A DNA stretch of 64,000 nt from positions 46,686,001 through 46,750,000 of the forward strand of contig NC_086107.1 of the NCBI RefSeq assembly GCF_963921235.1. Direction: 5' to 3'. Positions 5,581-60,529 of the stretch are shown here, piece after piece. A model generated the notes under the pieces. That model was not told the origin of the DNA, made no database searches, and worked only from the letters and a program-made list of their open reading frames with translations. Position numbers and translations under genes: made by a program. Origin of the DNA: Mobula hypostoma. Lineage: Eukaryota. Numbering within the stretch: the stretch's first letter is position 1; every line of letters begins with the position of its first letter.

Positions 5581-6087
5581 GAGACTCCCAGTGAAAAGAG
5601 GTTTCTCTAGCAACATACTTATACATTTTTTCTGCATTCTTCCCAGCTTAATGGTGTCATTCCTATAACAATGTACCCAAAATAAACTTTACAATTAAGG
5701 AAGTACCTTTTAAAGAGTATGCACTGTTACTAACGTCTGAGACACAACGCATTATTTAACCTTTACTAACCTGAGATGTTAGTAATGTTGACTAAAGTTT
5801 ATGTTCAAGTTAGTGCTGAGGGACTTATTTAATATTGATGAGGAATTTTGTATCTTCATATTACGTTGCTGAAGGTTTAATGACTCATCTGAAATCTGTG
5901 ATTTCAAACAATACAGCATCCACTTCAATCCACAAATCAATCTGTGATCCTGGAGTTGAACAACTTACTGACTTGTGATTTTGCTAGAAAGAATGCCATA
6001 ACTTGCACTGTAACTTGGATCTGTTTAATTTCTATTTGTAATATGTGATTGAAGATAAACTTACCTCATTTTTCTGTTTGCATTTAG

Positions 6088-6429
6088 AATCGTTGGATAT
6101 GACCATTTTTAGAAGTCCAAAGAATGTATTATTGAATACGGACATTACCTTGGAATGTAAAGTTACCGATTTTGGAACGCCACTTCTTGACCTATCAAAC
6201 GTAGGTGTTAAGTGGTTGTATGGATCCCAAAGGAAAGAAATCTATATCTTTAATGCAGGAGATGCTATGGCTAAACGACATGGAGCCAAAATATTTGAAA
6301 CTGAATTACGGAAAGGAGATGCTTCACTTTATCTTCCAAATATCCAATTAAATGAAGCAGGAGAATACATTTGTGTTGTACTTGTCACTCCTGACAGAGT
6401 GGAAAAGAGTTCACAAATTGTGGTCTTGG
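6088..6429 (+). CDS. NCR3LG1-like: exon: Ig V-set domain, B7-H6-like
   Basis: catttag|AA...TTG G|gtaaga, 342 nt, phase 1/1. Peptide ITLECKV...VGVKW...GDASLYLPNIQLNEAGEYICVVLVTP resembles the B7-H6 V-domain [26 protein letters not shown] motif as I recall it. Confidence 0.9.
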
Positions 6430-9400
6430 GTAAGAGATTTCTAAAACATTACCTGTTGTGAACAGAGAACAGCACAGCATAGGAATAAGCCATTTGGCCC
6501 ATGATGTTGTGCCAAACTAATTAAACTAGTAATTAGCTAGGAAGTTAAGTAATCCCTTCTGTCTACACAATGTCCTTACCCCTCAACTCTCTGCACATTC
6601 ATGTGCCTATCTCAGAGCTTTTTAAATGCATCTGTCACATCTGCCTCTGCTGCCCCCTCTGGCAGTGCATTGCAGGCACCCACTGCTCTCTGTCTCTTTT
6701 TAAAAGAAAGAAAACCTGCTGCTCACATCATCTTTAAACTTGCTCCCTCTCAGCTTTAGGCACTTTGACCCTGGGATAAAGACAATAGCTGTCTTTTCTA
6801 TCTTTGCCTCTCATAATCTTATAAATTTCCATCAGGTTTTCCCTCACCTTGACACTCCAGGGAAAGCAACCCTAGTTCATTTGAATGGTTTTAATCTGAA
6901 ACATCGACTGTCCATTTCCCTTCATAGATGCTGCCTGACCAAGCACGTTGTGTGTTGCTCCAAGTTTGTCCATCCTCTCCTTGTAGCACATGCTCTTTTT
7001 CTGAGGCAACATCCCACTTCTGTACCCTCTTCAAACCCTCCACTCTATTCCTATTATGGGGACAACCAGAACTGGAAGCAGTGCTCTAGATGTGGCATAA
7101 GCAGAGTTTTATAAAGCTGCAAAAGTAACTTATCAACTCTTGACCTCAATGCCTCAACTAATAAAGACAAGTGAGCCATGTACTTCCTTACCACCCTATC
7201 AACCTGTGCTGTTTTAAGAGACTGTGGCCTTGGGTCACAAAATCCCTCTGTAGATCAATGTTGTTAAAGATTTTGCCATTAAAAGTGTACTATCCCTTCA
7301 TATTTGAGTTTCCAAATTGTAAAACTTATTACTTAGCTGTCTTAAACTCTACCTGCCATTTCTGTGCCCATGTCTATAACTGATCTATATCCTGCCATAT
7401 CCTTTGGCAATTGTCTACACTATCCATAATGCATATAATCTCCGCAGAATTACCGATGCACCTCTCCACTGTCTGTTAATTTTTTATTTGGAGACTCTGG
7501 ATCAGAAGGAATACCTGATTTAAAAACTCTCACATGGAACTGCATTGAATGTTGAACAAGCCAATTATCTTTCAGGAGTAATAGTAAAGGGAAATCCTGT
7601 GTTTTGGAGCAATAATTGAAGGAAGGAAAGTGGTACATTTTGTTTATGTAAACATAGCAATATCTTAGACTTGGCTTTAGATATTTATGATAATACACTT
7701 CATCCTATCTGACTTAAGGTTGGATTTGCCTTTTAATACAGCTAAGCCAAAGGTGCTTCTATCCACGCAACACATTACCATTCTGAATGGTACAGAGAAA
7801 TCTGTCCAGTGTGATGCTGCGGAATTTTATCCTCAGAAGCATGAAATCTTCTGGGAAAAGATATCCGGAGGGAAAACTGAGAGATTGCAAAGACATGTCT
7901 GCACTGGAGCTGCAGTTTCTAATAATGATGGAACGTTTAACGTTTCCAGTAATATTAGAATTGAACCAACTCCGAATGATGATGGTAATGTATACAAGTG
8001 TACAGTGAGACATCAGTCCCTTCCAGACGAACTTTCAGAAGAGGTGAAACTCACGGTTGAAGGTATGTTCCATACTTTGAATAAGTTGGGGATACTATGT
8101 AGCAATATTTGTAACAATGTTTTTTAAAAATGTTCCACTGACTTAAATCAAAGGTTCATTGTTTGTTATTTCACCACATAAAGATACTGGCTGAGAAGTT
8201 GAGTCATGCCTGCAAATAATCAGTAGGCTGGCACATTTTGAATTTCTACAGAGACTCTTGGTGACTGCCTGTTAGTAACTTGCTCATTGAATCATTTAAC
8301 TGTTTGTACCAATGTAACTGCTGATTCTTTCCATGCCATGAGTAATTAGTTTTGACCTTTATCGTACAATTTCATTTTCTGCACACCACTGTCTATCTTT
8401 CCTGTGCTTGATTTGGTTGAGTAAGAGGGGCCCTGCCCTTCTGCCTCTGTCTTCACCAGTGGGTTAGATATTCTTCTAATATGTCCCAAAAATAATTGAG
8501 ACAGGTTTGCAGGCATCATTCTAGCCTTCTGTCACCACCCTTACCCAGGGCTAGTTTTTAATCTTTCTATTTTAATATTCAACAGCACAACTTGCAACTG
8601 ATGTCATTTGCAAATAAGTTGAGTCAAAAGTTGGGATACTGGTAACTCTGAGCCCACCACTTATCCCAGATTATATGGAAAATAACAAAACTACAGAATG
8701 GAATTCCCAGAACATGACTTAAAGTGAAAATAAGTTGCACAATTATGGTTTCAATTTCTTGAAAATCTTTACAGGGTTTATGAATGGTGATTTATAATTT
8801 GCAAAAACTCGTAAGTGTCTCAAGATGATGAAGTTTATTAGTGTGTCTAAATGCTCATATTTTTGTTTTGGTTTTCTAAGTTTCAGAGCCTGAATCAGCT
8901 TCAACAGGAGCAGTGGGAGCTGCATTTGTAGGAGGATTTGTGTTATGTATCCCGTTTGCTGCAGGACTACTTGCTTGTTGGTGGAGATTTCGAGCAGGTA
9001 ATATGAAGACAGTGAAATCATTTTGGTGTGTTGCAGTTTGTGCATTGAGTCATAGAAGATGCAGCTGAGAAACTGGCCATTTGGCTCACTGTGTCCATGC
9101 CAGCTATCAAACACTGGTTTACAAAATCCCATTTTATTTTCCCCAATTTCTCACTAGCTCCCCCCAGGTTCTACCATTCACCTACACTTGGAGAAATTCA
9201 CAGATTTCATTCACCTATTGGCCTGCATATTTTTTTGGTGATGCGGAAGGAAACCAAAGCACCTGAAGGAAATTCCTGCATCATGGCCAGTGTTGAAACT
9301 CCACACAGGCAGTGCCAGAGGTTAGCATTGAACCTGGGTTGCTGGCTGTGAATTTGTATGGCTGTTCTGATTCTTTGACTGTTTCTTGTATCTCTTCCCC

Positions 9401-12400
9401 AAATTGGGAAGTGATGATCTTTTTGCTTTGATTACAGCTAATCTGCAGTAATTGTACTCCTCCATTGGTGTTCAACAGAAAGTCTTGCTTGGTGTTTCTC
9501 CATTGAATGGAATTTGATACTCTAGGTGCAGCCTCCATTTAATTTTGATTTTTTTTTATAATTATATTTCCCTTTAAACACATTTGAATTTGGAATTGAT
9601 GCACAGTTCATTTTTATGATGCCATAAATTACATCATTCAATTTTCAAAGTTCCTTTTGGATAATGTAGATTGACTTCCCCAATAAGCTTCTTCCCTAGG
9701 AAGCTAGTTGAATTTCCTCCAGGTTCACCTGTCGTTGGGCACTGTTTTAATAGCACAGTGTGGAGCACCACTAAATGTGGCCCATTTCATGGGTTCTTAT
9801 CCTTTTTTCTGTCACTTCAATTGCTGAATTTGCTCTTGACATGAAATGAGCATGAAGCAACACACAGAAAATGCTGGAGAAACTGAGCAGGCTAGGCAGC
9901 ATCTATAGAAAAGAGTAAATAGACAAAGTCTCAGCCCAAAACCCTTCTTCAGGATTGAGAAGGGTCTCAGCCCACAACATCACTTGTTTACTTTTCTCCA
10001 TGGATGCTGCCTGGCCTGCTGAGTTTTCCAGGATTTTGTGTGTGTTGCTTGGATTATCAGCATCTGCAGATTTTCTCTTGTTTGTGAAATGCTTTATCTG
10101 CAGAGGAATTGGGGGGGGGGTAGAGAAAAAAATATGTTCTCGTGTTTAGAAATAAACTGTGCTAAGTGATGAATTTTCTCGCTTCTTACCACCTAGATTT
10201 TTTTAAGAACCTGTTTTAAAGTTCAGCAACGGAAGCAATTAACAGAAATCTGAAATCAGAAGTTAGATTTATCAATACACATTGATCTGATTGCATATCT
10301 GACTGTACTTTGATCTAATTGTGTATCTGACTGTACATGCATGTATGCAAAACAATCATGTATACAATTTCAATGTTAGGGCAATATCCTCCCACATTGT
10401 CCCTCTTCGTTGCTTGTACATTGCAATGGAGATACAACATGAAGATTTTTACTCCCTTGGATGTAAGAAAATAAATAAATAAATAGCCCTCCAGTGTTTC
10501 AGAATAAGCAAATAGTGCAATTTTTTAAAATACTCTTAATTCCACTGGATGCAATGTTTGTTGGTTTCGTTATTTTGGGCCGTAATATGCTGAATAAAAA
10601 TGGTACAAACTAATAGAAATTCTGACCTTGTCTGTTTACACTAGTTGTGTCTTATTTCTGTAATTCCAGAAAGGCAATAAAAACTGAGGATGCAAGAAAG
10701 AACATTTACATTGTTAAGTGTTAATTACTTATTTTGTTTTGATTAGTTCCTCCAAAAATTACTGGATGCAGTGAACATCAAGTTTTGAAACATCTTGAAG
10801 AAAGCGTAGTCACTTGGATGGTTAGCTCATTTCGACCTTATGAGATTACAATTGTGATCTACGCAAAGAGGAAGCAGAACGATAAATGTCGGCTTCTGAA
10901 TTGGAGCAGTAAGGATGGGAAAAAAATCTGCAGTCAGTATACATCAACAAATGGACCTGATTGTAATGAAACGAAAATCCTTATGCGGTCAGATGACGAA
11001 GATGCATCCTTTAAAGCACAGATTTCTGAATTAAAAACTAACACACGAAAGATTTGCAGTGTAGAAGTCAGTGTCAGAATACATCCAGATATTTCTCAGG
11101 ATGATGGGGCTGAGTTAAGTATCGAAGTTCAACATCAGGCACTTAAAGAGCCTATAACTAAGACACTGACACTAGACGTTAAAGGAGGTAAATTGCAAAT
11201 ATTTTCTTTAATTATTAATTGCTGTCTTTTGTGGCTCCATTTTGAATGTCTTTCATTAACATATATGGTATTTGACATTGATGTGGATACACAAAATTCT
11301 GGAGGAACTCAACAGGTCAGGCAGCAACTATGGTGAAGAGTACTGACGGGTCACGGCCCAAAACATCAGCTGTTTTGCCCTCCATAGATATTGCCTGACC
11401 TGCTGAGCTTCTCCAGCATTTTGCATGTTTTGCTCAAGACTTCCAGCACCAGTAGAATCTCTTATGTCAATGATGTCGATAGTTATGTTGAATACAGTTC
11501 TTCATCAGGTGGACTCAGTCATTAAACATTTAAAACAATTCAGTATTTTTTTTCTCTGTTTGCATTTCAGTTTGTGAGATTAATTTTTCATTTTCTCTTT
11601 TCTAAGTGCCACCTAAGGTTTTAAACATTTTGACGCCACCTCTCATCAAAGACAAGGAACCTGTGGCTTTGTCTTGTTCAGTCAGTGGATTTAAACCAAG
11701 ACCATTAAGTATTATATGGCAACAAAAGAGAAAGAATAAAGATTTGGAAGAACTTGTCCAGTTGCAGCTGGACAATACGACAAACAAACACGATGACAAC
11801 AGGATGAATTTGAAGGCAAAGCATTACATCAGTGAAGTGGAGCATGAAGACAAAACTTACAGCATTGCTAGTGTATTAGTTATTGTGCCAAATATACAGC
11901 AAGACCAGAACTCGCAGTACTTATGTAGCATACTGCACCACTCCACTAACGACAAGCAAGAGAAAGAAATAACCCTAAGAATTACAGGTATACTATTATC
12001 TAAGCCTTGCAACAAGAAAGGATCCAGATTGCTTATTTCATTTGGAGGCTCCTCTAATGAATGCATTGTCTCGATGCCATATTTCTCTTACTGTTACAAG
12101 GGAAAAGATTTGAAATAATTTAAGAATATAGCAAGCTAAATCAATAGGGTAGGATTGTACTGAAATTAATAAATTAAGTAATTATATTCTATGTCTTTCT
12201 CCAAAGTTTTCAAAGCTATAAGTAATTACATACGGAAAGTGCAATATCTAGTCCCCAACTTTTGAAAATCTGCTCATGTTTCAAACCTTGTTTTCTTTTC
12301 CAGCTCCTCCAAAACTGGGCACTATAAAGTGTGAAGCAGCAAAACCAATTGCAGAAGTGCCCATGAATTTAAGCTGTCAAATAAGTGCATTTTACCCCAG

Positions 12401-15400
12401 AGATATCATAGTTAAATGGCTCAAAGATGGCTCAGAAATACAACAAAATTCTGAAGTTAATGATGCAGTGATTGGACAGGATGAACTCTATCATTTCACA
12501 GCTGCTGTGCAGATTGTTCTTAGCAGCGCTGACACTGAGACAAAATACACATGCCAAGTAGCACATGAGAGCTTATCAAGGCCAATAGAGACTCACTGGG
12601 TAGCTGGTGAAGTGAGTAAGTAACTCGTTTTTTGTTTCTGAAGTTTTTTTCTATAATCAATTTGAAATTCATAAAGGATGGATGTCTAATGATAACTGTT
12701 GGTACTAGGACATACCCTTGTAATTTTTTGGCATCGGTTTACCAAGACAGCAAGCAGGGTGTCACAAAGTCTACAGGCTAATTGTATTACTGCAAAGGAA
12801 GGTGAACATGGTGGATTTGATTGAACAGAGAATTCCTTGGAAACTGAAAGTAAATGAAAATGGGTGAATTCATTGATTTGTTGGTAAAGAAATAAAAGTT
12901 AATACATAGATATAGTTAAGAGGAAAAAGTATAAAACTTTTAATTGCTATTGATTGTAAAAACTGAAATTATTTGATCAAAACCAGCCACCATATGACTA
13001 TACTTATCAAGGGTGTTTGACAGTATTTCACACAATTCAAAGGATATAGGATAGTTTAAAGAACTCTCCTGAATGATTCTATTTTTTAATTACTTTTAAT
13101 TAAGTGCTTCTAACTACTACATGAAATATATAAACAATGTAAAATGGCTGCCCTGATGATGAAAGCTAATTGCTTAACAAGAGAATAATGAGCAATCAAC
13201 AACAGCTGAGAACCCACAAGAAAGCAGTGAGATCCAGTAATTAGAAATAAAATAATAATCCAGATCAGGAAAGACAAGACAATAGTTTTTTTTTTCATTG
13301 CTTTTAATAGTTTTCAATCTTGAACTTCTTACTAAGACATGCTTGTCAGTTTTGGTTTAAATTGTAATATTCTTTAAGTTGCGTATTTAGTTTAACTTAT
13401 TTTTCTTCCTTTTTTATGTCTAGTTTCATTGCCAAAGATCTCAGAAATTAAGGCAGATCCAACTTGCCCTGAAATAGGAAAGCCTTTAACACTTTCCTGC
13501 ACGGCTTATGGATTTTTTCCAGAAGGAAATCAGATATTCTGGTTCAAAGATGATAGTAAATTTCAAGATGCATCACAAGCAGGAATAGTCACTGAAGAAA
13601 GTACAAAGGATTCCAGTGGTTTGTACTCACGATCATCCCGTTGGACATTTAACCCAACTGCTCGTGATCATGGGAAAGAGTTCAAGATGCAAATCCTTCA
13701 TTCTGAAACTTCAAGCAAGCCTGTGACATCCCGTTACCGTCTGCAATTTAGAGGTGAATACCCATTCTAACCAAGTCTGCAGTCACATTGTACCATAAGA
13801 AGCAGGCTATGCCATTTGGCCTCTGATGGCTGCTTTTCTATTCAGTAGGATCATGCCGGGCTTTGTGTTTTTATTGCAGTGTTATATCCTTGTACTGGCC
13901 CCACAGACTTTATTTTCCAATATCTTTCAATTTCTGCCTTGAAGATGGCTTCATAGCTTCCTCACAGCTCTGAATGATGGAATTTTTTTTTCCCATATCA
14001 AAACTGTTAAGACACTGATTCCTTGTTCTCGGTATATCAGCCAGTTGAAACATGAACTGCACATTAATCCCTGTCCAAACAGATAAGAGGTTTGTACATT
14101 TCAATGAGATTGACACTCTGTATTCTGATCAGACCACCAGTACATCATTTGCTGCTATCCCACAGAGCATAGCATCTTGGCCACAGTTACATATAGTGAG
14201 TGCCTAGAACTGGCATCTCAGTGAGAATAGCACTGTGATTGCCTCAGTGCACTGATCGGGTGCAGAGGAAGCCGTGGAGACAGTGTGCAGACTGTGCCTC
14301 TGATGGCTGGCACTGGAAAGTGCTGGATCAAGTAAGGTAACTAACCAGTGCAATGATGCAGGGCTTGGGTGCAGCCCATTGCTGGGGAGTAACAGAGGCT
14401 GATAATGTTACAGATTTTCAGAAATAAAAGGACTAGAGCACAATGTTCCCTCTAATTTGTAATGACTATTGTGTGCAAAAAATCTAGCACTCTGCAATTT
14501 TTTTGCCCAGTGACAACAGTACTTAACTTACCAACGAGGTAGAGGGTAACAATAATTTGTGCGCAAATAAAATTCCTTTGTTAGAAGGTTCTTTGCTGGA
14601 ATATATGGTTAATAACAAAGCAGTGAAGCACCAATATGCCCAATGTCACTGAGAAAATCTTCCAGTCATTGTGGAATGGGTTTCTGTCAGCTGATGCTTT
14701 CTGCTGCAGAACAGCAGTTTAACGGGGCGGGGGAGGGATGGGTGTGGGAGGGGGTATCACTGATGTTTAACAGCTGTGTGATCAGATTTTATGACAAATC
14801 CTCAGTGTGAAATGTGTAATTTTTAACTGGCACAGTTGGTGAAATGATTGGAACAATAATTTTACTGGAGGAGTTTAAATATCATAAAGAGTTGAAAGCA
14901 TTGTGTAAAATGTTGGGGCCCGTTAGCATGCAAATAAGTAATTATGGTACTGGATATGTTTTACTTGAAATCCATTATTGGGTCAAAGTAGAATTTTATA
15001 TTGCATATGAGACAAGCATTAGTATTCGGAATAGTGAGTTTGTGCTGTAGTATACAAGCTGCCATTCCAAATCAACGCTGTCAGTCTGTTGCCATCAATT
15101 CTTGGGTGCCCATATCCAATAAATTTCAATGCAGTTCTTTACATGATGACAAAATACACACAAAGAGCAAAATACAGATCTGAGTAAGCTTTACAAAATT
15201 AATTTTTTTCTGTTATTTGTATGCCTCCTGATCAGATGAATGAAGGTCAATGAGATGCTCATTTCCAGGTATGTCGGCAGGTTATGGCGAACGTTGAGTA
15301 GTTGTAGAAGGATCATGTGCTTTTCCTTTTGGCTCAGTCAGTGGCCCACTCTTCAAGTATACTAACATGGACTGGATTTTCATGGTATATTCTAGTGCCA

Positions 15401-18400
15401 CCTTCTGTGCCTGAAAATGCACTTTATCCTTCAGGGATTCATGTTAAAACAGGATCACTTCCCTTTTCTTCCAAGAAGCAGTGAATCCCTACTCTGGAGT
15501 CAATAATCTTTTTCAGCATGTATCCCACACTTTTGTCCACTCCATAGCCACGTCCTCACCATCAATTGTAACAGGGAGCAGTGCAGAGTGCTTGTGTGTT
15601 CATGTGACTCATTTCAATAAAGTAATACATGCAATGATCATTGATTTTAAACTTAAAACAATATTAATTTAACCATTTACTTCATATCAAGTCCTCCCAT
15701 TGACTGAACTGGTGTGGTTTTTTTCCTAATGCTGGGAATAGATGATTCTAGGAGGATGGAGATGTTTAAGATCTGGTTAGATGAGATAATCACTGTTTTA
15801 TATTTCTAAGAGCTAACTTGATTTGACTAATGTTTGGTTTTATTAAACTATTTTTTCCCCCTACAGGCAATACTGACAAAAAAGATGTCAGCAATAGAGC
15901 AATAAGTGAAGGTAAAATGTTCATTTACTTGAAATCCATTATTGGGGCAAAGTAGAATTTTAGATTTTTACAATTGAGACAAGCATTGGTATTTGGAATG
16001 GTGAATTTGAGCTGTTGTATACAGGCTGCCAGTCCATTTCAATGCCTGTCAGTTTGCTGCCTTCATTTCCTGGGTGCCCATATCCAATAAATTTCCACTG
16101 TTCTTCAGCTGATGACAAAACACACTGAGAGCCAAATACAGATCTACTTAAGCTTTACAAAATTAAATTAAATTTCTCGCATCATTTGTATACCTTCTGT
16201 TTCTCCTGATTATATATCAATGAAGTAGTCATCTCCAAACAGACTAGAGCATCTTACGGCGAACTACTTTTCCCTTGAGGCTCTGTCATGTCATCCACTC
16301 TTCAAATATTCTGATGTGGACTGGATTTTTGTGGTAGATTCTGGTGCCAACTTCCATGTCTTAACATGCATGTAATCGCTTTAGTCCTCCATTTTAAAAC
16401 AAGATCACTTCCCTTGTCTTCCACAAGGCAATGAATACTCACTCTGTTGTCAAGAATCTTGCCTACGCTTTCATCTGATACGTATTTGTGACTTCGGCGT
16501 TAACAACTAAACTCTCATCGCTGTATGTCTCTTCTCAAGTGAATGGGAAGGACGGAATGAGTGTGGTTCAGATCCTGAAATGCTGACAAAGCAGGACAGG
16601 TATGCTGGCATGTGATCCTCTGTGTTGAGAATACTCAGGAAGGAGAGGGATAGTTCCAATGAGTGTGTTTAGAGTGGACACCTTATTTTCAATGTCACTA
16701 TGAGAACATGGCATGACCAGTAGTCAGAAAAGAAAGCATATTTGGCATGATGGCCTTCATCAGGGTAATTGAATGTAGGGGACTAGGGCATTGCATTACA
16801 GTTGTACAAGATTTTGTTTGTGCTGCATATGGAGTATTGTGCACAGCTTTGTTTACTCTCCTATAGAAAAGATATCATTGGCTAGAAAGAGTGCAAAGCA
16901 GATTTAATGAGAATGTTGCCAGTGCTCAAGGGGGTGAGTTATAGGAGAGGCTGAGCAGGCTAGGACTTTAATTGTGGTGTATCGGAGACTGAGAGGTGAT
17001 CCTAGAGGTGTATAATATCAAATGGGCAAGGTCAGGATTAATGCATGAATCTTTTTTCCCATCAAAAGGAATGAAAAACCTAGAGAGCATTGGTTTAAGT
17101 TGAGAGGAGATATCTGATATTAAAAATGATCCAGAACTACTTCAAGCTAAATACCCTGCAATATTTAGCATCTTGAATGGCTGTGTTCCTGCGAAAATCA
17201 AAGTAACGTGGTATAAAGATGGAAGGATGCAAAAACAGGTCATCGTGACAGTGCAGAAGAAGGTCTGAGTTCATCAATTACAAGCATAAAATTTACACCA
17301 GCAAAAGCAGACCATGGGAGTTGTATCAAATATGTGAGGTGGTTCACAAAGAAAGGAAGTTCAAAAGAAAGAATTCAAGTTACACCTTCAAGGGAGATCT
17401 TCTACTGGATAGATATAGATACTTTATTGATCCCAAAGGAAATTACAGTGTCAGAGTAGCATTAAAAGTGCACAGATATAAATATTAGAAGGGAAAAAGT
17501 TACCTCAAACAGTCTAACAGGAGGGGTTCATCAATAACCCGGCTGTCGGCTGTCTCATTATAGAGCCTAATGGCCAAAGGTAGAATGACTTTATAATCGC
17601 GTTCTTTGGAGCAGCATGGTTGTCTTGGTCTATTACCCAAGTTATCCTCTGCTCAGCCAATGTGGCGTACAGAGGGTGAGAATCATTGTCCAGAATTTCC
17701 AGGCTTTTCTGTAGTGTCCTTTTTGACAGCCTGTAGTGTGTTTAGTTGGACACCTATGAAAGAGCCAGCCTTTCTAAACAGGTTAATGGGCCTGCTGTCA
17801 TTGCCCGTGTTGATGACATCGTCCTAGCACATCACCACAGAGAAGATCGTACTGGCGACAACAGACTGGTAGAAGAAGTGAAGGAGAAACTTGCACACTC
17901 CGAAGGAGCTCAGTCTCCTCAGGAAGTAGAAGCGACTCTGGCCCTTCTTGGACACAGCCTGTGTGTTCGTGCTCCACTCAAGTCTGTCATCCAGGTGTAG
18001 CCTCAGCTGCTTGTAGGCCCTCGCTCCAGCAACAACCTCACCATCAATTGTAACAGGGACCAGCGCACCATAGTAGTGTGTTCATCTGACGTATTCCAAT
18101 AATGTTATAGATGCAATGATCATTTATTTTAAACTTAAAATATTAATTTTACCATTTACTCCGAATCAAGTCTCACATTGACTGAACTGGTGTGTTTTTT
18201 TTTCCTATCGCTGTGAGTAGGTAATGATAGGTAGCTACAGTTGTTTAACATCTGGTTAGATGAGATGAGTATTGTTTTAAATTTCTAATGGCTAATTTGA
18301 TTTGACTAATGTTGGGTTTTATTAAACTACTATTTTTCCCCTTACAATGCTGTCAAGGAAGATGACAGCAGTGAAGCAACAGTGAAGGTAAACTGTTCAT

Positions 18401-21400: not shown

Positions 21401-24400
21401 ATGATTTTGGGATGTTCCTGAAAGGGACATGGTTTACTTGAAACACATTATTGGGTCAAAGTAGAATCTTATATGATTGCACATGAGATGTGCCATTGGT
21501 ACTTGGAATGGTGAATTTAAGCTGTTGTATACAAGCTGCCAGTCCATTTCAATGATCTGTCAGTCTGCTGCCTTCATCTCTTGGGTGTCCATATCCAAAA
21601 AATTTCCACTGATCTTGACAAGATGATGACAAGAATATACTGAAAGAGCCAAATACAATCTGATTATTCTTTACAAAATTAAATTTCTCATGTCATTTGT
21701 GTACCTCCTGTTTCTCCTGTAAATATCAATGAAGTAGTCATCTCCAAGCAAACACTTGAGCACCTAACGGTGAGCTACTTTTCCCTTGTGGCTTTGTCAT
21801 GTCGTCCACTCTTCAAACAGTCTACCGTGAGCTGGATTTTTATGGTAGATTCTGGTGACAACTTCCCTACCTGAACATGCGTGTAATCACTTTAGGCCTC
21901 CAAATTAAAACAAGATCACTTCCCTTCTCTTCCACAGGGCAATAAATACTGACTCTTGTCAAGAATCTTGCCGAGCATGCATCCCACACTTTCATCTGAT
22001 GTGTTTTTGTGACTTCTGCATTGATAAATAAACTCCCTTATCACTGTATCGCTCTTCTCTAGTGAAAGGGATGGAGGGAATGAGTGTGGTTCAGATCATG
22101 AAATGCTGACAAAGACAAGATGGGTAAACTAGCATGTGAGCCACTGTGTTGAGAATACCTCGGAAGGAGAAGCATAGTCCAGATGAGTGTGTTTAGAGTG
22201 GATATGATATTTTTAATGTCTCTATAAGAACATAACAGGTAGATAGGTGAATAAGAAGGAATATTTGGCATGGTACCCTTCATCAGAGCATTGAATGTAG
22301 GGTGCTAGGGCATTGCATTACAGTTGTACAAGATGTTGGTAATGTTGCACATGCAGTATTATGCACAGCTTTGTTTACTCTCTTATAGAAAATGTAACAT
22401 TGGCTGGAAAGAGTGCAATGCAGATTTATGAGAATTTTGCCAGGACTCAAGGGAGTGAGTTATAAGGAGAGGCTGAACAGGCTAGGATTTTATTTGTCAT
22501 TTATCAGAGACTGAGAGGTGATCCTGGAGGTGTATAATATCATATGGGCATAGTCAGGATTAATGTATGAATCTTTTTCCCATCAAAGGGAATGCAAAAA
22601 CTAGGGAGCATTGAGAGGAGATATCTGATATTAAAAGTGATCCAGAACCACTTCAAGCTAAATAGCCTGCAACATTTAGCATCTTGAGTGGCTATGTTCT
22701 TGTGAAAATCAAAGTAACGTGGTATAAAGATGGAAAGCCGCAAAAACAGGTCATCGTGAGATTGCAGAAGGTGGTCTGATTTAATCAATTACAAGCATAA
22801 AGTTTACACCAGCAAAAACAGATCATGGAAGTTGTATCAAATGTGAGGTGGTTCACGAAGAGACAAAGTTCAATAGAAAGAATTTAAATTACACCTTCGG
22901 GAGAGAACTTGTACTTGATAGATAGATACTTTATTGATCCCAGAGGAACTTGCAGTGTCACAGTAGCATTACAAGTGCACAGATATAGATATTAGAACCG
23001 AAGTCAAAGGAATTAAAAATAAGTTATCTCAAACAGCATAACAGGAGGGGATCATCACTGCACCGACTAGAGGAAGAGGGTACTAATGACCTGATATAGT
23101 GCCGTTTGGAGCAGCACAGTTGCCTTAGTCTGTTACTAAAAGTTCTCCATTCTGCCAAGATGGCATACAGAGGTGAGAATCATTGTCCACAATTGCCAGG
23201 ATTTTCTGTAGTGTCTTTTGTTCTACCACAGCATCCACTTTGATTTCTATAACAGAGCCAGCCTTTCTACGAACTTTATTGAGCCCGTTGGCATCATCCA
23301 TGTTGATGCCATTGTCCCAGCACACCACTGCATGGAAGATTGTACTGGTGACATTAGCCTGTTAGAATAGGTGAAAGAGACGCCAGCATATTCCAAAAGG
23401 CCTTAGTCTTCTCAAGAGGTAGAGGCCACTCTGGCCCTTCCAGGACACAGCCGCTGTGTTGGCACTCCACTCAAGTCTGTCATCCAGGTGCACCGCCAGT
23501 TACTTGTAGGTCCTCATCAATTGTAACAGGGAGCAATGCAGAGCGCCAGTCTGTTCATGTGGCACATTTCAATAAAGTTGTTTTAGATGACATGATCATT
23601 TATTTTAAACTTAACAAAATATTAATTTAACTATTTACTTCATATCAAACCTCACATTGACTGAAATGGAATGTTTTTTTTCCTTATGCAATGAATAAAT
23701 AATTCTAGGTGGTTGGAGTTATTTAACATATGGTTGGATGAAATAATTAACGTTTGAAATTTACAAGAGCCAATTTGATTTGATGAATCTGAGGTTTTCT
23801 TAAACTACTTTCTTTTTTACCTACAGACCGTATCTCTGAGAAAGATGGCAGCAGTAAAGCAAAAAATGAAGGTAAAGTGTTCATTGTGGGAAGTTCCTGA
23901 ACTGGACATGTTTTACTTGAAGTCCATCATTAGGTCAAAGTAGGATTTTACATTATTACACATGAGACAATCATTAGTACTTGGAATTGTGAATTGTTAA
24001 CTACAAGCCGCCAGCCCATTTCAATTCTCTCTCAGTCTGCCACCTTCATTTCCTGGGTGCCCAAATCGAATAAATTTCCACAGTTCTTTGGATGATAAAA
24101 GTACACTCAAAGAACCAAATACAGATCCGATCAAGCTTTACAGAAGTGAACTTTTTCTGTCATTTGTATGCCTCTTATTTCTCCTGATCAGATGAGTAAA
24201 AATCAATGAGATACTCATTTCCAGACTCTTTGGCACCTTACGGTGAAATATGAGCATGTGTAGAAGGATCATGTGCTTTTCTCTTCGGCTCTGTCAGTGG
24301 TCCACTCTTCAAATATTCTAACCTAGCCTAGATTTTCATGGTAGATTCTGGTGCCATTTTCCATGCCTGAACATGGTTGTAATTGCCTTAGTCCTCCATT

Positions 24401-27400
24401 GTGAATGCACAAATCATTTTCCCTTGAAAGGGAATTGAAAACGAGAGCACAGGCTTAAGTTGAGAGGAGATATCTGATATTAAAAGTGATCCCGAAATAG
24501 TTGAAGGTAAAAAGCCTGCAACATTTAGCATCTCCATGAAGGGCTATTTTTCTGCGAAAATCAAAGTAACTTGATATAAAGATGGAAAGGCACAAAAACA
24601 GGTCATCCTGAATTTGCAGAAGATGGTCTGAATTTATCAATTACAAGCATAAAGTTTATACCAGCAAAATCAGATCATGGGAGTTATATCAAATGTGAGG
24701 AGGTACATGAAGAAAGAAAGTTGGGAAGAAAGAATTCAAATTACGCCTTCAAGGGAGATCTTCTACTGGATAGATATAGATACTTCATTGATCCCAAAGG
24801 AAATTACAGTGTCAGAGTAGCATTAAAAGTGCACATATATAAATATCAGAAGGGAAATCGAATTTTAAAAATCTGGTACTTCAAACAGTCTAACAGGAGG
24901 GGGTCATTACCTACCCGCTGCTAGCTGACTCATTATTGATCCTAATGGCCGAAGGTAGAATGAATTTATATAGCACCCTTGGAGCAGCACAGTTGTCTTA
25001 GTCTATTACTAAAAATTCTCCTCCGTTCAGCCAAGGTGCCATATAGAGGGCAAGAATCATTGTCCAGAATTGCCATGATTTTTCGTAGTGTCCATTGTTC
25101 TACCACAGCCTCCCGTGTGTCCAGTTAGACTCCTGTGACAGAGCCAGCCTTTCTGAACAGCTTATTGAGCCTGATGGCATCACCCGTGTGGATGCCATTG
25201 CCGCAGCACACCACCACATAGAAGATTGTACTGGTGACAACAGAGTGGTCGAAGGAGTGAAGAAGAAGCCTGCATACTGCAAAGGACCTCAATCTCCTCA
25301 AGAAGCAGAAGCAACTCTGGCCCTTCTTGGACACCGCTTCTGTGTTGGTGCTCCACTCAGGACTGTCATCCAGGTGCATCCCCATGGACTTGTAGATCCT
25401 TTGCACAGCCACGTGCTCACCGTTAATTGTAGGGCAGAGTACTTGTGTGTTCATGTGACACATTTCAATAAAGTTGTTACAGATGCAGCGATCATTTATT
25501 TTAAACTTAACAAAATATAACATTAACTATTTACTTCATATCAAACCTATTAACTGAAACGGTGTGTTTTTTTTTCCTAATGCTATGGATAGATAATTTT
25601 AGGTGGTTACAATTTAACATCTAGTTAGATGAAATAATTCATGTTTTAAATTTATGAGCTAATTTGATTTGACTAATGTCAGGTTTTGTTAAACCACTTT
25701 TTGTTTTAACCTACAGACTCTGACTGTAAGGAAGATTTTAAAAGTTTCAGGGGTCCATCTAATGTCAGAAATGTATACAATATACATCCTGAAATTCTTT
25801 TTCTTTGCAACCATCCGTGAAAACAGAGGAGTGCCCCAGAAAATGAATGATAGTTAAATGTTAGAACCCCAAAGACCCCCTCAGCTCCCTACTCCCACAC
25901 ATAAGCAGCAGCAAAGGAACGATCCCCCTTCCCACAACAGCTAAAAAATCATTGGCGCCCTCCACTAAGCACTCAAGTGTGCAGCAAAGCATCAATAAAG
26001 ACACAGGCTTGCAGTACCCCAAAGTCTACTTGTTCACCTGGTAATTCGATACATCACAGGCTGTGTGTGTGTCTCTCTCTCTCTCTCTCTCCCCTCTCTC
26101 CTCCTCCTCTCTCTCCCCCCTCCCTCTTCCCCCCCTCCCTCCCTCTCTTCCCCCCCTCCCTCCCTCTCTTCCCCCCCTCCCTCCCTAATAAGGGAAAAAG
26201 AGATGTCCCTGTTTCACATAACAAATAACTCACTGATTTACAATGTTAAAAAGTCCTTTGTATCGTTTTTTCTGAGCTCTGTGCCAAAGAATTCAGCTCT
26301 TTGGGCACACAGCCAGAGATCTTCCATCTCCCATGACACACCAATGGCAGCAGTAGAGCAAAAGATCTTCATCTTGGGAAGTGATCATCTTGGGAAGATC
26401 CTGTACTAGGCATAGTTTACTTGAAACACACTATTGGGTCAAAGTATAATTTTATATTATTGCACATGAGACGAGCATTGGTATTTGGAATGGTGAATTT
26501 GAGCTCTTGTATACAAGCTGCCAGTCCATTTCAATGCTCTCAGTCTGCTGCCTTCATTTCTTGAGTGCCCATATCCAATAAATTTCTATAGTGCGTGAGA
26601 TGATGACAGAAATATACTCAGAGCCAAATACAGATCTAGTTAAGTTTTACAAATTAATTTTTCCCTGTCATTTGAACACCTATCTTTGTCTGATCAGATG
26701 AGTAAAGATCAAAGAGGTGGTCCTCTCCAAAGAGACACTTCAGCACCTTACTGTAAACTATGTGCAGCTGTAGCAGGATCATGTGCTTTTCCCTTGGCTC
26801 TGTCAGGTGGTCCACTCTTCATGTATTCTAACATGGACTGGATTTTCATGGTATATTCCAGTGCCACCTTCCATTCCTGAACATATTTTTTACCCTTCAG
26901 GGATTCATGTTAAAACAAGATCACTTCCCTTTTCTTCCAAGAAGCAGTGAATCCTGATTCTGGTGTCAGTAATCTTTTTCAGCATGTATCACACACTTTT
27001 GTCCACTCCATAGCCACGTCCTCACCATCAATTGTAACAGGGAGCAGTGCAGAGTGCTTGTGTGTTCATGTGACTTATTTCAATAAAGTTGTTATAGATG
27101 CAATGATCATTTATTTTAAACTTAACACAATATGAATTGAACCATTCAGTTCATATCAAGTCCTCCCATTGACTGAACTGGGTGTGGATTTTTTTTCTAA
27201 TGCTGGGAATAGATGCTACTAGGTGGATACAGATGTTTAAGATCTGGTTAGATGAGATAATCAGTGTTTTAAATTTCTAAGAGCTAATTTGATTTGACTA
27301 ATATTGGGTTTTACTAAACTATTTTTCCCCCTACAGACAACGCTGACAAGGAAGATGGCAGCAATAGAGCAACAAGTGAAGGTAAACTGTTCATTTACTT

Positions 27401-33400: not shown

Positions 33401-35687
33401 TGCAGTTGTTCCACATGAAACCTTTCTTTTGCCATGCTCTTTTCGGCACCTCTTCCTTCGTTCTGTAACTGAGAAATCTGATCAGAATCGATCTGGGCTG
33501 GGTGCCTGCCGGAGGCTGTGGTGCCAACGCGCGGTGAGCCCTTTCTATCTGTAGGTCTTTTGCGGCCGGTATATCAAGGTTCTCTCTAAGCAGCTTCTCC
33601 ACGAAGGGAATCATCAATCCCGGTTTACCTTCGGTTCCTTCGGGAACTCCGTAGATCCTCACATTTTCCCTTCTCGAGCGGCCGCCTTGATCTATTAGTT
33701 TCCACTGGAGTTGGTCTTGTAGCTTCAGCATTTCTGCCATCACATCCTCGGCGTTTTGTAGCTTCTCTTCAATTCCAACAATCCTCGCTTCGGCTTCATC
33801 TATCCGCGAGTTAGTTTTTACTATTTCTCCTTTAATATCTTCCTGCTGTTATCTTGTCGGAACTCGCAAATCTCTCCGAGAATCAAAGACAGAGTCACCG
33901 ATTCCCCCTCATTATCTCCGTCCTGGCTTGCCGTGGGAGAGCTAGGCCCTTCGCCTTGCTGCATCTCTTTATGTTTATCAGCCTTCGCAGCGGACTTTTT
34001 ATTCTTGTTCTTAGACATCATCCTTGCCCCTTTTATTAATATAGTTATGCAATATTAAGTATTTGTCTAAATTCGATTTTGGGGCAGTTTACCTTTTTTG
34101 TCGAGAGACCTTTTCCTTACACCGCCATTCCCTTAATGACCCGGAAGTCCTCTGTTCTTTCACGTCTGTCTCCATCAAATCAGAGTTGTCCACGGCCCCT
34201 ATTTAACAGATACAATATCATTTCACCGGAGAGCTGCACGTGCTGCGTCACACCACCATCTTCTCCTCTCCTCCTCTAACGTAATATTCTAACGTAGACT
34301 GGATTTTTATGATAGATTCTGGTGCTAACTTCCATACCTGAACATGCTTGTAATCACTTTAGGCCTCCATTTTAAAACAAGATCACTTCCCTTCTCTTCC
34401 ACAAGGCAATGAATACTGACTCTGTTGTAGAATCTTGCCGAGCATGCATTCCACACTTTCATCTGATACATATTCGTGACATCTGCATTAACAACCAAGC
34501 TCCTTTATTGCTGTACGTCTCTTCTCTAGTGAATGGGATGGAGGGAATGAGTGTGGTTCAGATCCTGAAATGCTGACAAGGCAAGACGTGTAAACTGGCA
34601 TGTGAGCCACTGTGTTGAGAATAGCTAGAAAAGAGAAGCATAGTCCAGATGAGTGTGTTTAGAGTGGATATAATATTTCTTATAGAAAAGATATCATTGG
34701 CTGGAAAGAGTGCAAAGCAGATTTATGAGACTGTTCTCAGGACTCAGGGAGGTGAGTTATAGGGAGAGGCTGAGCAGGTTAGGACTTCATTTATTGGGGT
34801 ATCGGAGACTGAGAGGTGATCATGCAGGTGTATCATATAATATGGGGCATAGTCAGGATGAATGCACAGATCTTTTTCCCACCAAAGGGAATTGAAAATT
34901 AGAGAGTATAAGTTAAGTGTGAGAGGAGAAAAATTTTGAAGGGACCTGAGGCAGAGAATGATACATAGTATATCAAATAAGCTGCCAGAGGAAGTGTTGG
35001 AGCAGGTAAAATAATAACATCTAAAAGACATTTGAACAGGTACATGGATAGTGTTTTAGGGATATACATTCAACATGGGTAGATGTGTCTAACTTCCAGC
35101 ATCTTGGTCAGTGTTGATGAATTGAGACAAAGCCCTGTTCCTATGCTGTATGATTCCATGATTCTATGCCATGACAGCAGATATTTCATCTGGATGATAT
35201 TCCATATCTACCCAACTGCAGTAGTTCAGGTGGCAAATGGTGATTTAGTGTAAAGATTTAAATTTGTAAGAATTAAAATAAGGACTTTGCGAGTGCAGTG
35301 ATATATATTGACTCACATAGGTCTTTATTTTTGAAATGCCTTTAAGCTTCTCATGTTATTTATTGTAAATTCTTTTTTTCAGCAGATGTATGGGAGAAGG
35401 TTTCAGAAATAAAGTGCCTCACAAAAAGTCCTAAAATTGGTCAACCAGTAACTCTTTCTTGCGATGTTAAAGGATGTGCTGTTGAAGAGGCTCATATCAT
35501 CTGGTACAGAGATGCTTATCCTTTTGATGAAAAGGAGTACGTTACAAACAAGCCATTTCAAAATGGTAGCGGTTTCACCACTGAACTAACTTATACGCCA
35601 AAACCAAATGATAAACAACACATCCAAGTTCAAATTGAATTTAATTTGGAAGAACATATGAAACAGTATGACTTGATATTAATTTGA
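6088..35687 (+). CDS. NCR3LG1-like: multi-exon B7-H6/NCR3LG1-like Ig-superfamily gene: V-C1-TM followed by multiple C1-like domains and microexons (5' leader not in window)
   Basis: A chain of in-frame phase-1/1 exons with AG/GT boundaries (listed individually below). The V and C1 domains show B7-H6 hallmark motifs. Joining all exons into one transcript is inferred. Confidence 0.7.
7742..8062 (+). CDS. NCR3LG1-like: exon: Ig C1-set domain (ectodomain)
   Basis: aatacag|CT...GAA G|gtatgt, 321 nt. Peptide VQCDAAEFYP...IFWEK...NNDGTFNVSS...YKCTVRHQSL has both canonical Cys and the C-strand Trp. Confidence 0.92.
8887..8997 (+). CDS. exon: stalk plus transmembrane helix
   Basis: tttcag|AG...GCA G|gtaata, 111 nt, phase 1/1. 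Encodes EPESASTGAVGAAFVGGFVLCIPFAAGLLACWWRFRA: about 25 hydrophobic residues followed by RFR. Not in the ORF track. Confidence 0.85.
9859..10046. repeat. palindromic (hairpin) interspersed repeat resembling Penelope-like element termini
   Basis: 9859-9920 and 9987-10046 are inverted copies. Related copies at about 11288-11430, 36185-36790, 48710-48945, 49240-49390 and 58715 onward. Confidence 0.6.
10747..11187 (+). CDS. exon: post-TM atypical C1-like Ig domain
   Basis: gattag|TT CCT CCA AAA...GGA G|gtaaat, 441 nt, open. VPPKI start, SFRP (FYP-equivalent), LSIEVQHQALKEPITKTLTL end. Confidence 0.8.
11607..11987 (+). CDS. exon: post-TM C1-like Ig domain
   Basis: tctaag|TG CCA CCT AAG...ACA G|gtatac, 381 nt. 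LSCSVSGFKP...IIWQ...YLCSILH. Confidence 0.88.
12304..12615 (+). CDS. exon: post-TM C1-set Ig domain
   Basis: ttccag|CT CCT CCA AAA. LSCQISAFYPRDIIVKWLKDG...YTCQVAHESL. Donor taken as GTG A|gtaagt; an alternative phase-1 donor follows 12606. Confidence 0.88.
13424..13753 (+). CDS. exon: post-TM C1-like Ig domain lacking the F-strand Cys
   Basis: gtctag|TT TCA TTG CCA AAG...AGA G|gtgaat, 330 nt. LSCTAYGFFP...IFWFKD...DHGKEFKMQILH. Confidence 0.88.
14836..14937 (+). CDS. candidate 102-nt exon (VGEMIGTIILLEEFKYHKELKALCKMLGPVSMQI)
   Basis: cacag|TT...ATA A|gtaatt, open and phase 1/1. It lies just before the first copy of the intron segment that follows each microexon. The polypyrimidine tract is weak. 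Confidence 0.3.
15867..15911 (+). CDS. 45-nt microexon (GNTDKKDVSNRAISE)
   Basis: ttttttccccctacag|GC...GAA G|gtaaaa, phase 1/1, no stop. Confidence 0.7.
16720..17109 (+). mobile_element. CR1 LINE 3' fragment (paralogous copies about 19790-19960, 22240-22620, 24425-24469, 34670-35160)
   Basis: Degenerate version of the CR1 RT C-terminus (LERVQ-RF-RMLPGL...YRERL-RLGL...RLRGDL) seen intact at 42836-43846. Confidence 0.75.
17110..17393 (+). pseudogene. degenerate C1-like Ig exon, copy 1
   Basis: ISDIKNDPE...KIKVTWYKDG...TSIKFTPAKADHGSCIK with frameshifts. The 5' end is fused to CR1, there is no acceptor, and the donor is lost (caag|ggagat). Confidence 0.8.
17405..18125 (-). mobile_element. Rex1/Babar-type non-LTR retrotransposon 3' fragment (paralogous copies about 20155-20590, 22915-23600, 24765-25500; short pieces about 15500-15620 and 27000-27090)
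   Basis: Minus-strand peptides such as HLDNSLEWSTNTEAVSKKGQS..FLRRLRSF and DAIRLNKLFRKAGSV (ORFs 20349-20564, 25125-25523, 23125-23328). Confidence 0.8.
18346..18387 (+). pseudogene. dead microexon copy
   Basis: Homologous to 27337-27381 but the acceptor AG is deleted (cttac-aatgct versus ctacagacaacgct). The donor gtaaac is retained. Confidence 0.65.
18683..18727 (+). CDS. 45-nt microexon (DRTPKKVGSSKAKNE)
   Basis: ttttttacctacag|AC...GAA G|gtaatg, phase 1/1, no stop. Confidence 0.7.
19967..20150 (+). pseudogene. degenerate C1-like exon, copy 2 (3' half only)
   Basis: WYKDG...TSIKFTPAKTDHGSCIKCEVVDEE; 5' half deleted. Confidence 0.75.
20819..20869 (+). CDS. candidate 51-nt chimeric microexon (DFDSAHMNGSRSSSLSK)
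   Basis: Array-type acceptor ttttttaactacag|AC, then a donor AAAG|gtacgt at the edge of an inserted repeat. Phase 1/1, open. Confidence 0.45.
20870..21366. mobile_element. interspersed repeat inserted into a microexon (paralogous copy about 25750-26345)
   Basis: The 20-nt 5' half (actctgactgtaaggaagat, 25717) and the 25-nt 3' half (ggcagcagtagagcaaaagataaag|gtaaag, ending 21392) add to 45 nt and are separated by this repeat in both copies. Family not determined. Confidence 0.65.
22621..22900 (+). pseudogene. degenerate C1-like exon, copy 3
   Basis: ISDIKSDPEPLQAK* ... KIKVTWYKDGK...IKCEVVHEE, with an in-frame stop and the same CR1 junction as copy 1. Confidence 0.8.
23827..23871 (+). CDS. 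45-nt microexon (DRISEKDGSSKAKNE)
   Basis: tttttacctacag|AC...GAA G|gtaaag, phase 1/1, no stop. Confidence 0.7.
24470..24754 (+). pseudogene. degenerate C1-like exon, copy 4
   Basis: ISDIKSDPEIVEGKKPATFSISMKGYFSAKIKVT*YKDG...DHGSYIKCEEVHEE; TGG mutated to TGA plus a frameshift. Confidence 0.8.
26062..26186. repeat. (GT)n/(CT)n microsatellite and pyrimidine-rich ~20-nt tandem repeat
   Basis: Directly visible; absent from the paralogous element at about 21180. Confidence 0.9.
27337..27381 (+). CDS. 45-nt microexon (DNADKEDGSNRATSE)
   Basis: tttttccccctacag|AC...GAA G|gtaaac, phase 1/1, no stop. Confidence 0.7.
27996..28040 (-). mobile_element. Tigger terminal fragment
   Basis: TA-CAGGTTTCCCCCGCCATCTGAAGGTAGAG is the reverse complement of the element end at about 3880-3918. 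Confidence 0.7.
28348..34275 (-). mobile_element. near full-length L1 retrotransposon (ORF1 + ORF2, frameshifted)
   Basis: ORF1-like 33042-33743 (RRENVRIYGVPEG, IERAHR). APE endonuclease 31702-32679 (SYNVNG, FLQETH, GGDFN, YSRIDY, SDHSP). RT 29763-31772 (LDAEKAFD, QGCPISP, FADD). C-terminus 28903-29817 (CWRRC, HIFWDC). T-rich tail at about 28348-28375. Confidence 0.95.
35386..35687 (+). CDS. terminal C1-like Ig exon ending in TGA (absent from ORF track)
   Basis: tttttttcagcag|AT (NAGNAG acceptor; 35383 also in frame). About 100 open codons: DVWEKVSEIKCLTKSPKIGQPVTLSCDVKG...HIIWYRD...FTTELTYTPKPND...YDLILI*. Confidence 0.75.
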
Positions 35688-50052: not shown

Positions 50053-50154
50053 ATGCAATGTCTTAGTTTAACAGATTTTTTGAAGTTGGATCTTCACTCA
50101 TGTTTTCTCTTTGTCTTTTGACTTTTTTGTATTACTATATCCTTTTTAAAATAG

Positions 50155-55500: not shown

Positions 55501-55505
55501 AAAAA
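52504..55505 (+). mobile_element. young 5'-truncated L1 with intact 879-aa ORF2 remainder
   Basis: ORF 52513-55152 (KAPGPDG, LDAEKAFD, QGCPLSP, YADD, CDRC...HMFWSC). AATAAA and poly(A) at about 55487-55505. 11-bp TSD GAGATTGTTCT at 52493-52503 and 55506-55516. Confidence 0.96.
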
Positions 55506-56447: not shown

Positions 56448-56771
56448 TATCTTCTCCATTAATGGACAACATGACAGATGAACCACAATACCCAGAGCCA
56501 GGAAACGAAGCAACATTCCTATGCGTTGCTTAACACTTCTTTCCAGAGAATGTCATGTTTATGTGGTTCAAAAATGATAAGAGGATTGATGATAATGAAA
56601 TAATTTCTACCACCCCAGAGATAGATAAAAATACCGGCTTCTTCTGCAGTGAGAGTCGATAGAAATGGATAATTTCAGTAGAAGATCGTCAAATTGATTT
56701 CAAAGTTGAGGCTCATCATTTTCCACCTTCTCATAGACCTACAAGGATTTCTCACACATTGCGCCTTGGAG
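56448..56771 (+). pseudogene. C1-like Ig exon with two in-frame stops
   Basis: tttacag|TA...GGA G|gtatga, 324 nt, phase 1/1. ATFLCVA*HFFPENVMFMWFKND...ESR*KW. Stops at 56531 (TAA) and 56660 (TAG). Confidence 0.85.
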
Positions 56772-60400: not shown

Positions 60401-60529
60401 GTGCGTTAAACTGGTGCAAAACCCTATACGTTTATTAATTTTGTTAGCAAGAACTGAATTTATCAGAGTAAAAAAAAACCAACTGCTAATTGTTTTTGAA
60501 TAACATAATTTGTTTTCATATATTTGTTT

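Follow-up and report, generated by a model that had tools for sequence, protein, structure and literature searches.

The window analysed here is a 64,000-nt stretch of Mobula hypostoma contig NC_086107.1 (46,686,001-46,750,000), and all positions given below are counted within it, on the + strand unless indicated. It contains a gene whose product resembles the immune ligand B7-H6 (NCR3LG1) on one side of the membrane and carries a long chain of immunoglobulin (Ig) domains that probably lies on the other. In the explanation that best accounts for the data, the exons located between 6088 and 35687 are exons 2-14 of a single gene, LOC134353704. The encoded protein consists of an ectodomain with one V-set and one C1-set Ig domain, a single transmembrane (TM) segment, and a tail of ~660 aa made up largely of Ig domains derived from the C1 set. 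Judged from its sequence, this tail is quite probably cytosolic and would have evolved in that compartment for a long time, keeping the Ig core while the disulfide is being lost and showing no excess of glycosylation sequons.

A single transcript joins ectodomain, TM segment and tail

The original prediction, made from the DNA letters, had proposed a V exon, a C1 exon and a TM exon followed by four C1-like exons (hereafter X1-X4), microexons and a terminal C1-like exon, all of phase 1/1 on the + strand. The whole series is present (Table 1), with RNA joints covering it through microexon 1 and a RefSeq protein accounting for the rest. The layout and the frame stood as proposed, whereas the start of the TM exon had to be moved from 8887 to 8881 (6 nt more, frame unchanged) and the end of X3 was set at 12615.

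RNA contigs from four Mobula hypostoma runs were placed on positions 6000-11999 and then, this time together with contigs from two runs of a close relative, on 10700-16699. The divergence of this relative amounts to ~3% for introns and 1.3% for exons. The Mobula hypostoma contigs contained the joints 6429>7742, 8062>8881, 8997>10747, 11187>11607, 11987>12304, 12615>13424 and 13753>15867 (last position of one exon > first position of the next), and all seven introns defined by the reads are of the GT..AG type. The joints from 6429>7742 to 11187>11607 are supported by the whole depth of the contig and lie on single contigs measuring up to 4098 nt, with a loose end leading into X3, and past 13753>15867 the contig runs on into a further similar microexon. 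As had been anticipated, the TM exon was spliced to 10747, and this was the case in the dominant contig of every Mobula hypostoma run. That is, no dominant contig represented transcripts ending soon after 8997, and no leader that could mark the start of a separate gene was found between 8997 and 10747. Introns were covered at a depth of just 3-5, corresponding to the pre-mRNA level, apart from expressed repeats such as the one responsible for the depth at ~9800-10400 in the intron between the TM exon and X1. The two runs of the close relative gave 11187>11607, 11987>12304 and, with two replaced letters, 12615>13426 (versus 12615>13424), and their contigs reach 118 and 1225 nt upstream of X1. 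Joints 6429>7742, 8062>8881, 8997>10747 and 13753>15867 were obtained with the Mobula hypostoma runs only. A separate downstream gene or a conjoined transcript, considered as a candidate, was ruled out by the splice joints and by the layout conserved across relatives (see below).

The spliced model (925 aa) is 100% identical, bar one residue at an NAGNAG acceptor, to the RefSeq protein P0201 (LOC134353704 isoform X2, "uncharacterized protein", 966 aa), and this identity confirms all five microexons along with the terminal exon and the signal peptide. The latter is visible in P0201 and as a loose end of the RNA contigs. A search of the window with this 30-nt loose end gave no match, so that the leader exon lies >6 kb upstream, outside the window.

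Membrane topology of the tail

The TM segment forms a Kyte-Doolittle peak of 2.22, the sole such peak in the ray protein. It is followed on its C-terminal side by basic residues in all family members (RFR in the ray), in agreement with a cytosolic tail. A second TM or re-entrant segment would have brought the downstream domains outside the cell; none was seen in the ray protein or in ~70 relatives at Kyte-Doolittle thresholds of 1.6-2.0, and the few extra hydropathy peaks correspond to signal peptides or beta-strands. The hydropathy scan thus shows one TM only, as the original prediction expected, and the signal peptide, the one hydrophobic segment and the RFR motif together predict a single-pass type I membrane protein.

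The state of the Ig domains on either side of the membrane was compared among homologues. A phmmer search with X3 was run against 1.84 billion representative sequences, the 150 best representatives were analysed further, and a hidden Markov model of the C1-like domain built from the family gave 1190 aligned domain hits in them. In classical arrays located before a C-terminal TM (n=297), both canonical cysteines (the Cys pair) were present in 97% of the domains and sequons had an observed/expected (O/E) ratio of 1.58; these arrays come from 27 hits, the names of which were not checked except for one 'titin-like'. For proteins with the TM in the middle, the domains preceding the TM (n=111) had a Cys pair in 86% of cases and a sequon O/E of 1.73, against 48% and 1.11 for the domains following it (n=465). 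Among 36 representatives of the B7H6-like family, the Cys pair was kept in 36/37 pre-TM but in 80/200 post-TM domains (Fisher p = 6e-12), with sequon O/E ratios of 1.58 and 0.98, respectively. In other words, one or both canonical cysteines have been lost from 60% of the domains after the TM versus 3% of those before it, and a single unpaired Cys remains in 102/200 tail domains of this set. The core Trp is present in 91-95% of the domains across the three classes of the 150-representative set, and in 172/200 tail domains of the 36-representative set. No conserved sequon column was found after the TM. The loss of the Cys pair and the chance-level sequons after the TM both point to a tail that evolved away from the secretory pathway, with its fold kept. 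The proposal that this gene encodes a cytoplasmic Ig chain thereby receives independent, evolutionary support.

Fold and conservation of the tail domains

X2, X3 and X4 pass the Pfam C1-set (PF07654) gathering cut-off of 21 bits, and the scores of the tail domains are well above those for the I-set. X1 gave no usable Pfam or PDB match, and the terminal exon falls below the C1-set cut-off with a weak match to Ig_3 only; both are called Ig-like only because of the AlphaFold2 model of the stingray orthologue (P0003, Hemitrygon akajei), which is 78% identical to the ray protein over the whole length. In this model every tail domain is a beta-sandwich with a predicted local distance difference test (pLDDT) score of ~85-96 (77-90 for X1 and 88-96 for the terminal domain) and the TM segment is a helix. 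The pLDDT of <35 over the microexon region indicates that this part is disordered. Among solved structures, X3 matched shark UrIg2 first (9dmx, 2.8e-21), followed by SIRP, MHC-I alpha3 and IgM/IgA constant domains.

Between ray and stingray, identity is 81-88% for the V and C1 domains and 78-88% for X1-X4 and the terminal domain, the C-terminus encoded by the terminal exon being 86% identical. The TM exon is conserved at 57% and the microexons, which are alternatively included in isoforms of the stingray orthologue, at 53%. As the tail domains match the ectodomain in this respect, the folded part of the tail is under constraint, i.e. purifying selection. C1-set motifs are present in the family consensus, and the domains differ in what is left of the disulfide. 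That is, X1, X4 and the terminal domain of this ray each miss one or both canonical cysteines, whereas X2 and X3 keep the pair. In X2, the Cys, Trp and Cys positions are kept in 26/26, 26/26 and 24/26 aligned members, respectively. X4 keeps the B-strand Cys in 25/26 and the Trp in 26/26 aligned members, with a family consensus devoid of the F-strand Cys, and X1 has lost the canonical pair in the ray lineage, its B-strand Cys being kept in 16/26 relatives.

An ectodomain of B7-H6 type

The top PDB match of the V domain was NCR3LG1/B7-H6 (2e-13), ahead of CD276 (3.5e-09), and B7-H6 was also the top named non-antibody PDB match of the C1 domain (8e-14). Superposition of the AlphaFold2 model of the stingray orthologue on human B7-H6 gave target-normalised TM-scores of 0.87-0.92 at 31-33% identity. 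As is typical of the B7 family, the ectodomain combines a single V-set domain with a single C1-set domain, each encoded by one phase-1 exon. By search ranking and model superposition, it is closest to B7-H6 among the B7/butyrophilin members.

A nurse-shark entry (P0210, 1092 aa), deposited as 'Natural killer cell cytotoxicity receptor 3 ligand (B7H6)', aligns to the ray protein over the full length with 41% identity, Ig tail included; beyond its TM, at ~258-284, come VPPE and then 800 aa occupied by Ig-like domains. The ray gene is the devil-ray member of the family named B7H6 (NCR3LG1) by the nurse-shark depositor. It shares with B7-H6 the signal peptide, the V-set plus C1-set ectodomain and the single TM. 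The cytoplasmic part of human B7-H6 is a non-Ig, Gag-like tail of ~170 aa with motifs of the immunoreceptor tyrosine-based inhibitory (ITIM), SH2 and SH3 types. Unlike this short tail, that of the ray protein consists of ~660 aa of C1-derived Ig domains, and the same holds for the nurse-shark 'B7H6'. Since the latter also has an Ig tail, the short non-Ig tail defines the mammalian protein and not the family.

Distribution of the family

Besides the stingray orthologue, dozens of full-length relatives with 27-54% identity aligned straight through the TM; orthologues and paralogues taken together span 27-79% identity. They were found in rays, skates, many sharks, the chimaera Callorhinchus, the bichirs Polypterus and Erpetoichthys, the coelacanth Latimeria and, among amphibians, a caecilian, a newt and frogs. 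Nearly all are annotated as 'uncharacterized protein', one Polypterus entry being named NR3L1. The layout they share is a signal peptide, a V and a C1 domain, one TM, and then 350-900 aa of C1-type domains with no second TM. The TM is located at ~residue 230-300, except in a skate protein where it lies at 494 after a doubled V-C1, and a single mid-protein TM followed by >350 aa was found in 78 of the 150 best representatives. Our data show the exons, their splicing, the Ig folds and a layout that is conserved across jawed vertebrates.

Two further sets of related proteins were noticed. Five frog proteins (P0004, P0006, P0019, P0031 and P0044), 1300-2200 aa in length, combine a single TM at ~residue 330 with >900 aa of C1-like domains behind it, their best X3-like stretch being located before the TM; these may represent another family in which Ig domains are likewise arranged inside the cell, or fused gene models. 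The other is a Mobula hypostoma paralogue (P0197, LOC134353705), in which ectodomain and TM are 92-95% identical to those of LOC134353704 and an X4-like tail domain occurs six times in tandem (aa 576-1235). The six copies indicate that the number of tail domains is plastic, as in UrIg2. The best matches of P0197 in the window are the exons of LOC134353704 itself, at only 71-95% identity, so LOC134353705 is encoded elsewhere, outside the window.

Alternative readings of the tail

A number of observations weigh against a cytosolic, functional tail. As a predictor of TM segments, the hydropathy scan is crude. Over ~450 million years, the canonical Cys-Trp-Cys of X2 and X3 has been retained in 24-26 of the 26 members, which is what disulfide-bonded domains would show. 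A RefSeq model of the stingray gene (isoform X6, P0153, 935 aa) skips exactly the TM exon, and with this exon skipped the whole chain would be secreted. The ratio of non-synonymous to synonymous substitution rates (dN/dS) relative to the close relative is ~0.6, so that short-range constraint would not be strong, even if the 13 listed differences (4 synonymous and 9 non-synonymous) are too few to weigh. Finally, several tail Ig exons have decayed to pseudo-exons in this lineage.

One alternative reading, which we regard as unlikely, is that the tail works outside the cell, the TM exon being a cassette, the main product a secreted protein of seven Ig domains, and the membrane form a minor or storage form. 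Such a product is exemplified by P0153, and would be easily made given that all exons are of phase 1/1 and skipping keeps the frame; the preserved Cys pairs of X2 and X3 in the aligned relatives and the fact that the closest solved relative of X3, shark UrIg2, is extracellular would also fit. However, the dominant contig includes the TM exon in the four Mobula hypostoma runs, 8062>10747 is not among the joints listed for the devil ray (though contigs drop rare variants), and the TM is present in all other gene models examined. Moreover, the tail is devoid of extracellular signatures (Cys pair in 40% versus 97% of domains; sequon O/E 0.98 versus 1.58), and unpaired canonical cysteines in half of its domains would be a liability in the endoplasmic reticulum.

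That the tail is an evolutionary leftover, i.e. C1 exons of a UrIg- or SIRP-like neighbour captured behind the TM that are translated, functionless and slowly decaying, seems very unlikely. The lost Cys pairs, the pseudo-exons found within the tail region as well as beyond the stop codon, the plasticity in domain number illustrated by the six X4-like copies of P0197, and the dN/dS of ~0.6 speak for it. Yet chimaera and amphibians still share the layout and the single domains, 86-93% of the tail domains retain the core Trp, C1-set motifs are kept in the family consensus, the reading frame is open over 660 aa, and ray-stingray conservation of the tail equals that of the ectodomain, with the TM and the linker much lower.

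It is hardly credible that the transcript is an assembly chimera, or a read-through of a V-C1-TM gene into a multi-C1 gene located downstream: short-read contigs can be chimeric and a contig across two genes proves no single transcript, but in four runs the 8997>10747 joint is clean, has GT..AG borders and shows the whole depth of the contig, no leader or alternative terminal exon of comparable depth lies between 8997 and 10747, and >30 species have a predicted or deposited protein with the same continuity, that of the nurse shark among them.

Gene map and surrounding sequences

The exons located in the window are listed in Table 1. Four of the five microexons are 45 nt long and one is 51 nt, and the acceptor of the terminal exon is either 35383 or 35386 (NAGNAG).

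Table 1. Exons of LOC134353704 within the window and the evidence for each
Feature	Position	Strand	Evidence and remarks
V-set exon, B7-H6-like	6088..6429	+	Phase 1/1; Pfam V-set 30.8 bits (cut-off 26); RNA joint 6429>7742
Ectodomain C1-set exon	7742..8062	+	Pfam C1-set 39.9 bits; RNA joints at both ends
TM exon, 39 codons	8881..8997	+	Acidic stalk, ~26 aa hydrophobic, then RFR; RNA joints 8062>8881 and 8997>10747 (four runs)
X1, first post-TM Ig-like exon, 147 aa	10747..11187	+	RNA joints; fold from the model of the orthologue
X2, post-TM C1-set exon	11607..11987	+	Pfam C1-set 30.4 bits; RNA joints
X3, post-TM C1-set exon	12304..12615	+	Pfam C1-set 55.2 bits; RNA joints 11987>12304 and 12615>13424
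X4, post-TM C1-set exon, unpaired B-strand Cys	13424..13753	+	Pfam C1-set 33.3 bits; RNA joints 12615>13424 and 13753>15867
Microexon 1, 45 nt, charged 15-aa unit	15867..15911	+	RNA joint 13753>15867 (two runs)
Microexon 2, 45 nt	18683..18727	+	AG/GT-flanked open phase-1 exon; placed by P0201, identical to the model
Microexon 3, 51 nt, Ser-rich	20819..20869	+	Open exon as for microexon 2; placed by P0201
Microexon 4, 45 nt	23827..23871	+	Open exon as for microexon 2; placed by P0201
Microexon 5, 45 nt	27337..27381	+	Open exon as for microexon 2; placed by P0201
Terminal Ig-like exon	35383..35687	+	Open frame; stop codon 35685-35687; placed by identity to P0201 and by the stingray C-terminus (86% identical)

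The region of the microexons is made of repeat units of ~2.5 kb, inside which lie three Ig-like pseudo-exons with stop codons and frameshifts (19955-20113, 22618-22886 and 24467-24720, +). These resemble a tail domain of which the electric ray Narcine has kept an intact version (P0015, aa 888-981), and each unit probably once held a microexon and an Ig exon. Two degenerate microexon copies are located at 18340-18390 and 25707-25760 (+), the AG acceptor and one base being missing from one copy, whereas the second lacks a usable donor.

Downstream of the stop codon, relics of Ig-like exons were found at 50154-50321, 56447-56779 and 60085-60402 (+), of which one is partial, one has two stop codons and one is open. 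The open relic shares 32-37% identity with tail domain five of homologues from chimaera, shark and electric ray. Neither V nor C1 nor TM exons accompany the relics at 50154-60402. They were ruled out as part of LOC134353704, which stops at 35687, one relic having stop codons, and likewise as part of LOC134353705, the best window matches of P0197 being the exons of LOC134353704.

The gene-bearing window is rich in long interspersed nuclear elements (LINEs) and CR1 elements. An L1-like LINE with open frames of 233, 325, 669 and 304 aa lies on the - strand in the last intron of the gene (28903-33743) and looks like a recent insertion. Downstream of the gene are a CR1-like reverse-transcriptase fragment (42782-43846, +) and an 885-aa open frame for a LINE reverse transcriptase (52495-55149, +).

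Comparison with other Ig and beta-sandwich proteins

As described in PMC12227049, UrIg and UrIg2 have a non-rearranging V domain, multiple C1 domains and a TM, the number of C1 exons shifts by tandem exon duplication, and in UrIg2 the C1 array stands outside the cell, before a C-terminal TM. The ray gene resembles UrIg2 in having C1 exon arrays of changing number and in that X3 is closest to UrIg2 among solved structures. It differs in that its V domain is B7-like, whereas that of UrIg2 is of VJ type, and in that its TM separates the first C1 from the remaining Ig domains instead of standing at the C-terminus.

Butyrophilins have a B7-type ectodomain, one TM, small symmetric cytoplasmic exons and then a cytosolic B30.2 beta-sandwich, which in BTN3A1 follows an inside-out sensing logic. 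The ray protein presents the same order of B7-type ectodomain, TM, small symmetric exons and folded beta-sandwich, which we take as a working analogy, useful in thinking about inside-out signalling, and not as a sign of relationship. No Pfam match to SPRY, PRY or B30.2 was obtained for the exons of this gene or for five relatives, and the presumed intracellular fold of the ray protein, unlike that of butyrophilins, is of the Ig C1 type. Beta-sandwich modules of extracellular type also serve as cytosolic scaffolds in integrin beta4, where they are FN3 domains, and in titin and obscurin. The top Foldseek match of the whole chain, using the model of the stingray orthologue, was titin I65-I70. Unlike these modules, which are FN3 or I-set domains, the ray tail belongs to the C1 set according to Pfam.

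Proposed mechanism and significance

In the arrangement that we propose, the signal peptide encoded upstream would direct the B7-H6-like V and C1 domains to the outside of the cell, and one membrane helix, flanked C-terminally by basic residues, would act as stop-transfer segment. About 5 residues past the TM would begin the four C1-set-derived Ig domains (X1-X4), followed by a disordered, charged linker made of five alternatively usable microexons, which would set the reach of the last Ig-like domain. The tail could then be a protein-binding scaffold coupling an NKp30-type surface ligand to intracellular partners, a role weakly suggested by analogy with the systems above.

By extension of the same analogy, and only as a tentative and rather doubtful proposal, the ancestral B7-H6 of jawed vertebrates might have been two-faced, with an NKp30-type ligand outside and a cytosol-adapted C1-set array inside that binds partners, mammals having later exchanged this tail for an unrelated one. 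The partners would be stress, viral or cytoskeletal proteins, and the array would control or report ligand display.

The gene itself is not new, as RefSeq already lists it as a prediction and B7H6 is the name under which a shark homologue was deposited. No description of an Ig tail after the TM was found in the literature searched, which did not include a 2012 B7-family paper, and in the portions of that literature that were checked B7H6 is named in reference lists only.

C1-set domains are a hallmark of extracellular adaptive-immune recognition, as in antibodies, T-cell receptors, MHC molecules, tapasin and SIRP. To our knowledge, all characterised C1-set proteins are extracellular or lumenal, and we know of no characterised cytosolic C1-set domain. 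The loss of the disulfide with the fold kept, and without an excess of glycosylation sites, turns the topology of the tail into a simple, testable prediction. If this prediction is true, a cytosolic C1-set chain attached to a protein of the natural killer cell ligand type, present from chimaeras to amphibians, would represent a new cellular context for the fold, and would suggest that the B7-H6/NKp30 axis at first had an intracellular function, later lost in mammals. Should the two-faced proposal also hold, this C1-set Ig domain family would be the first with a recognised cytosolic role.

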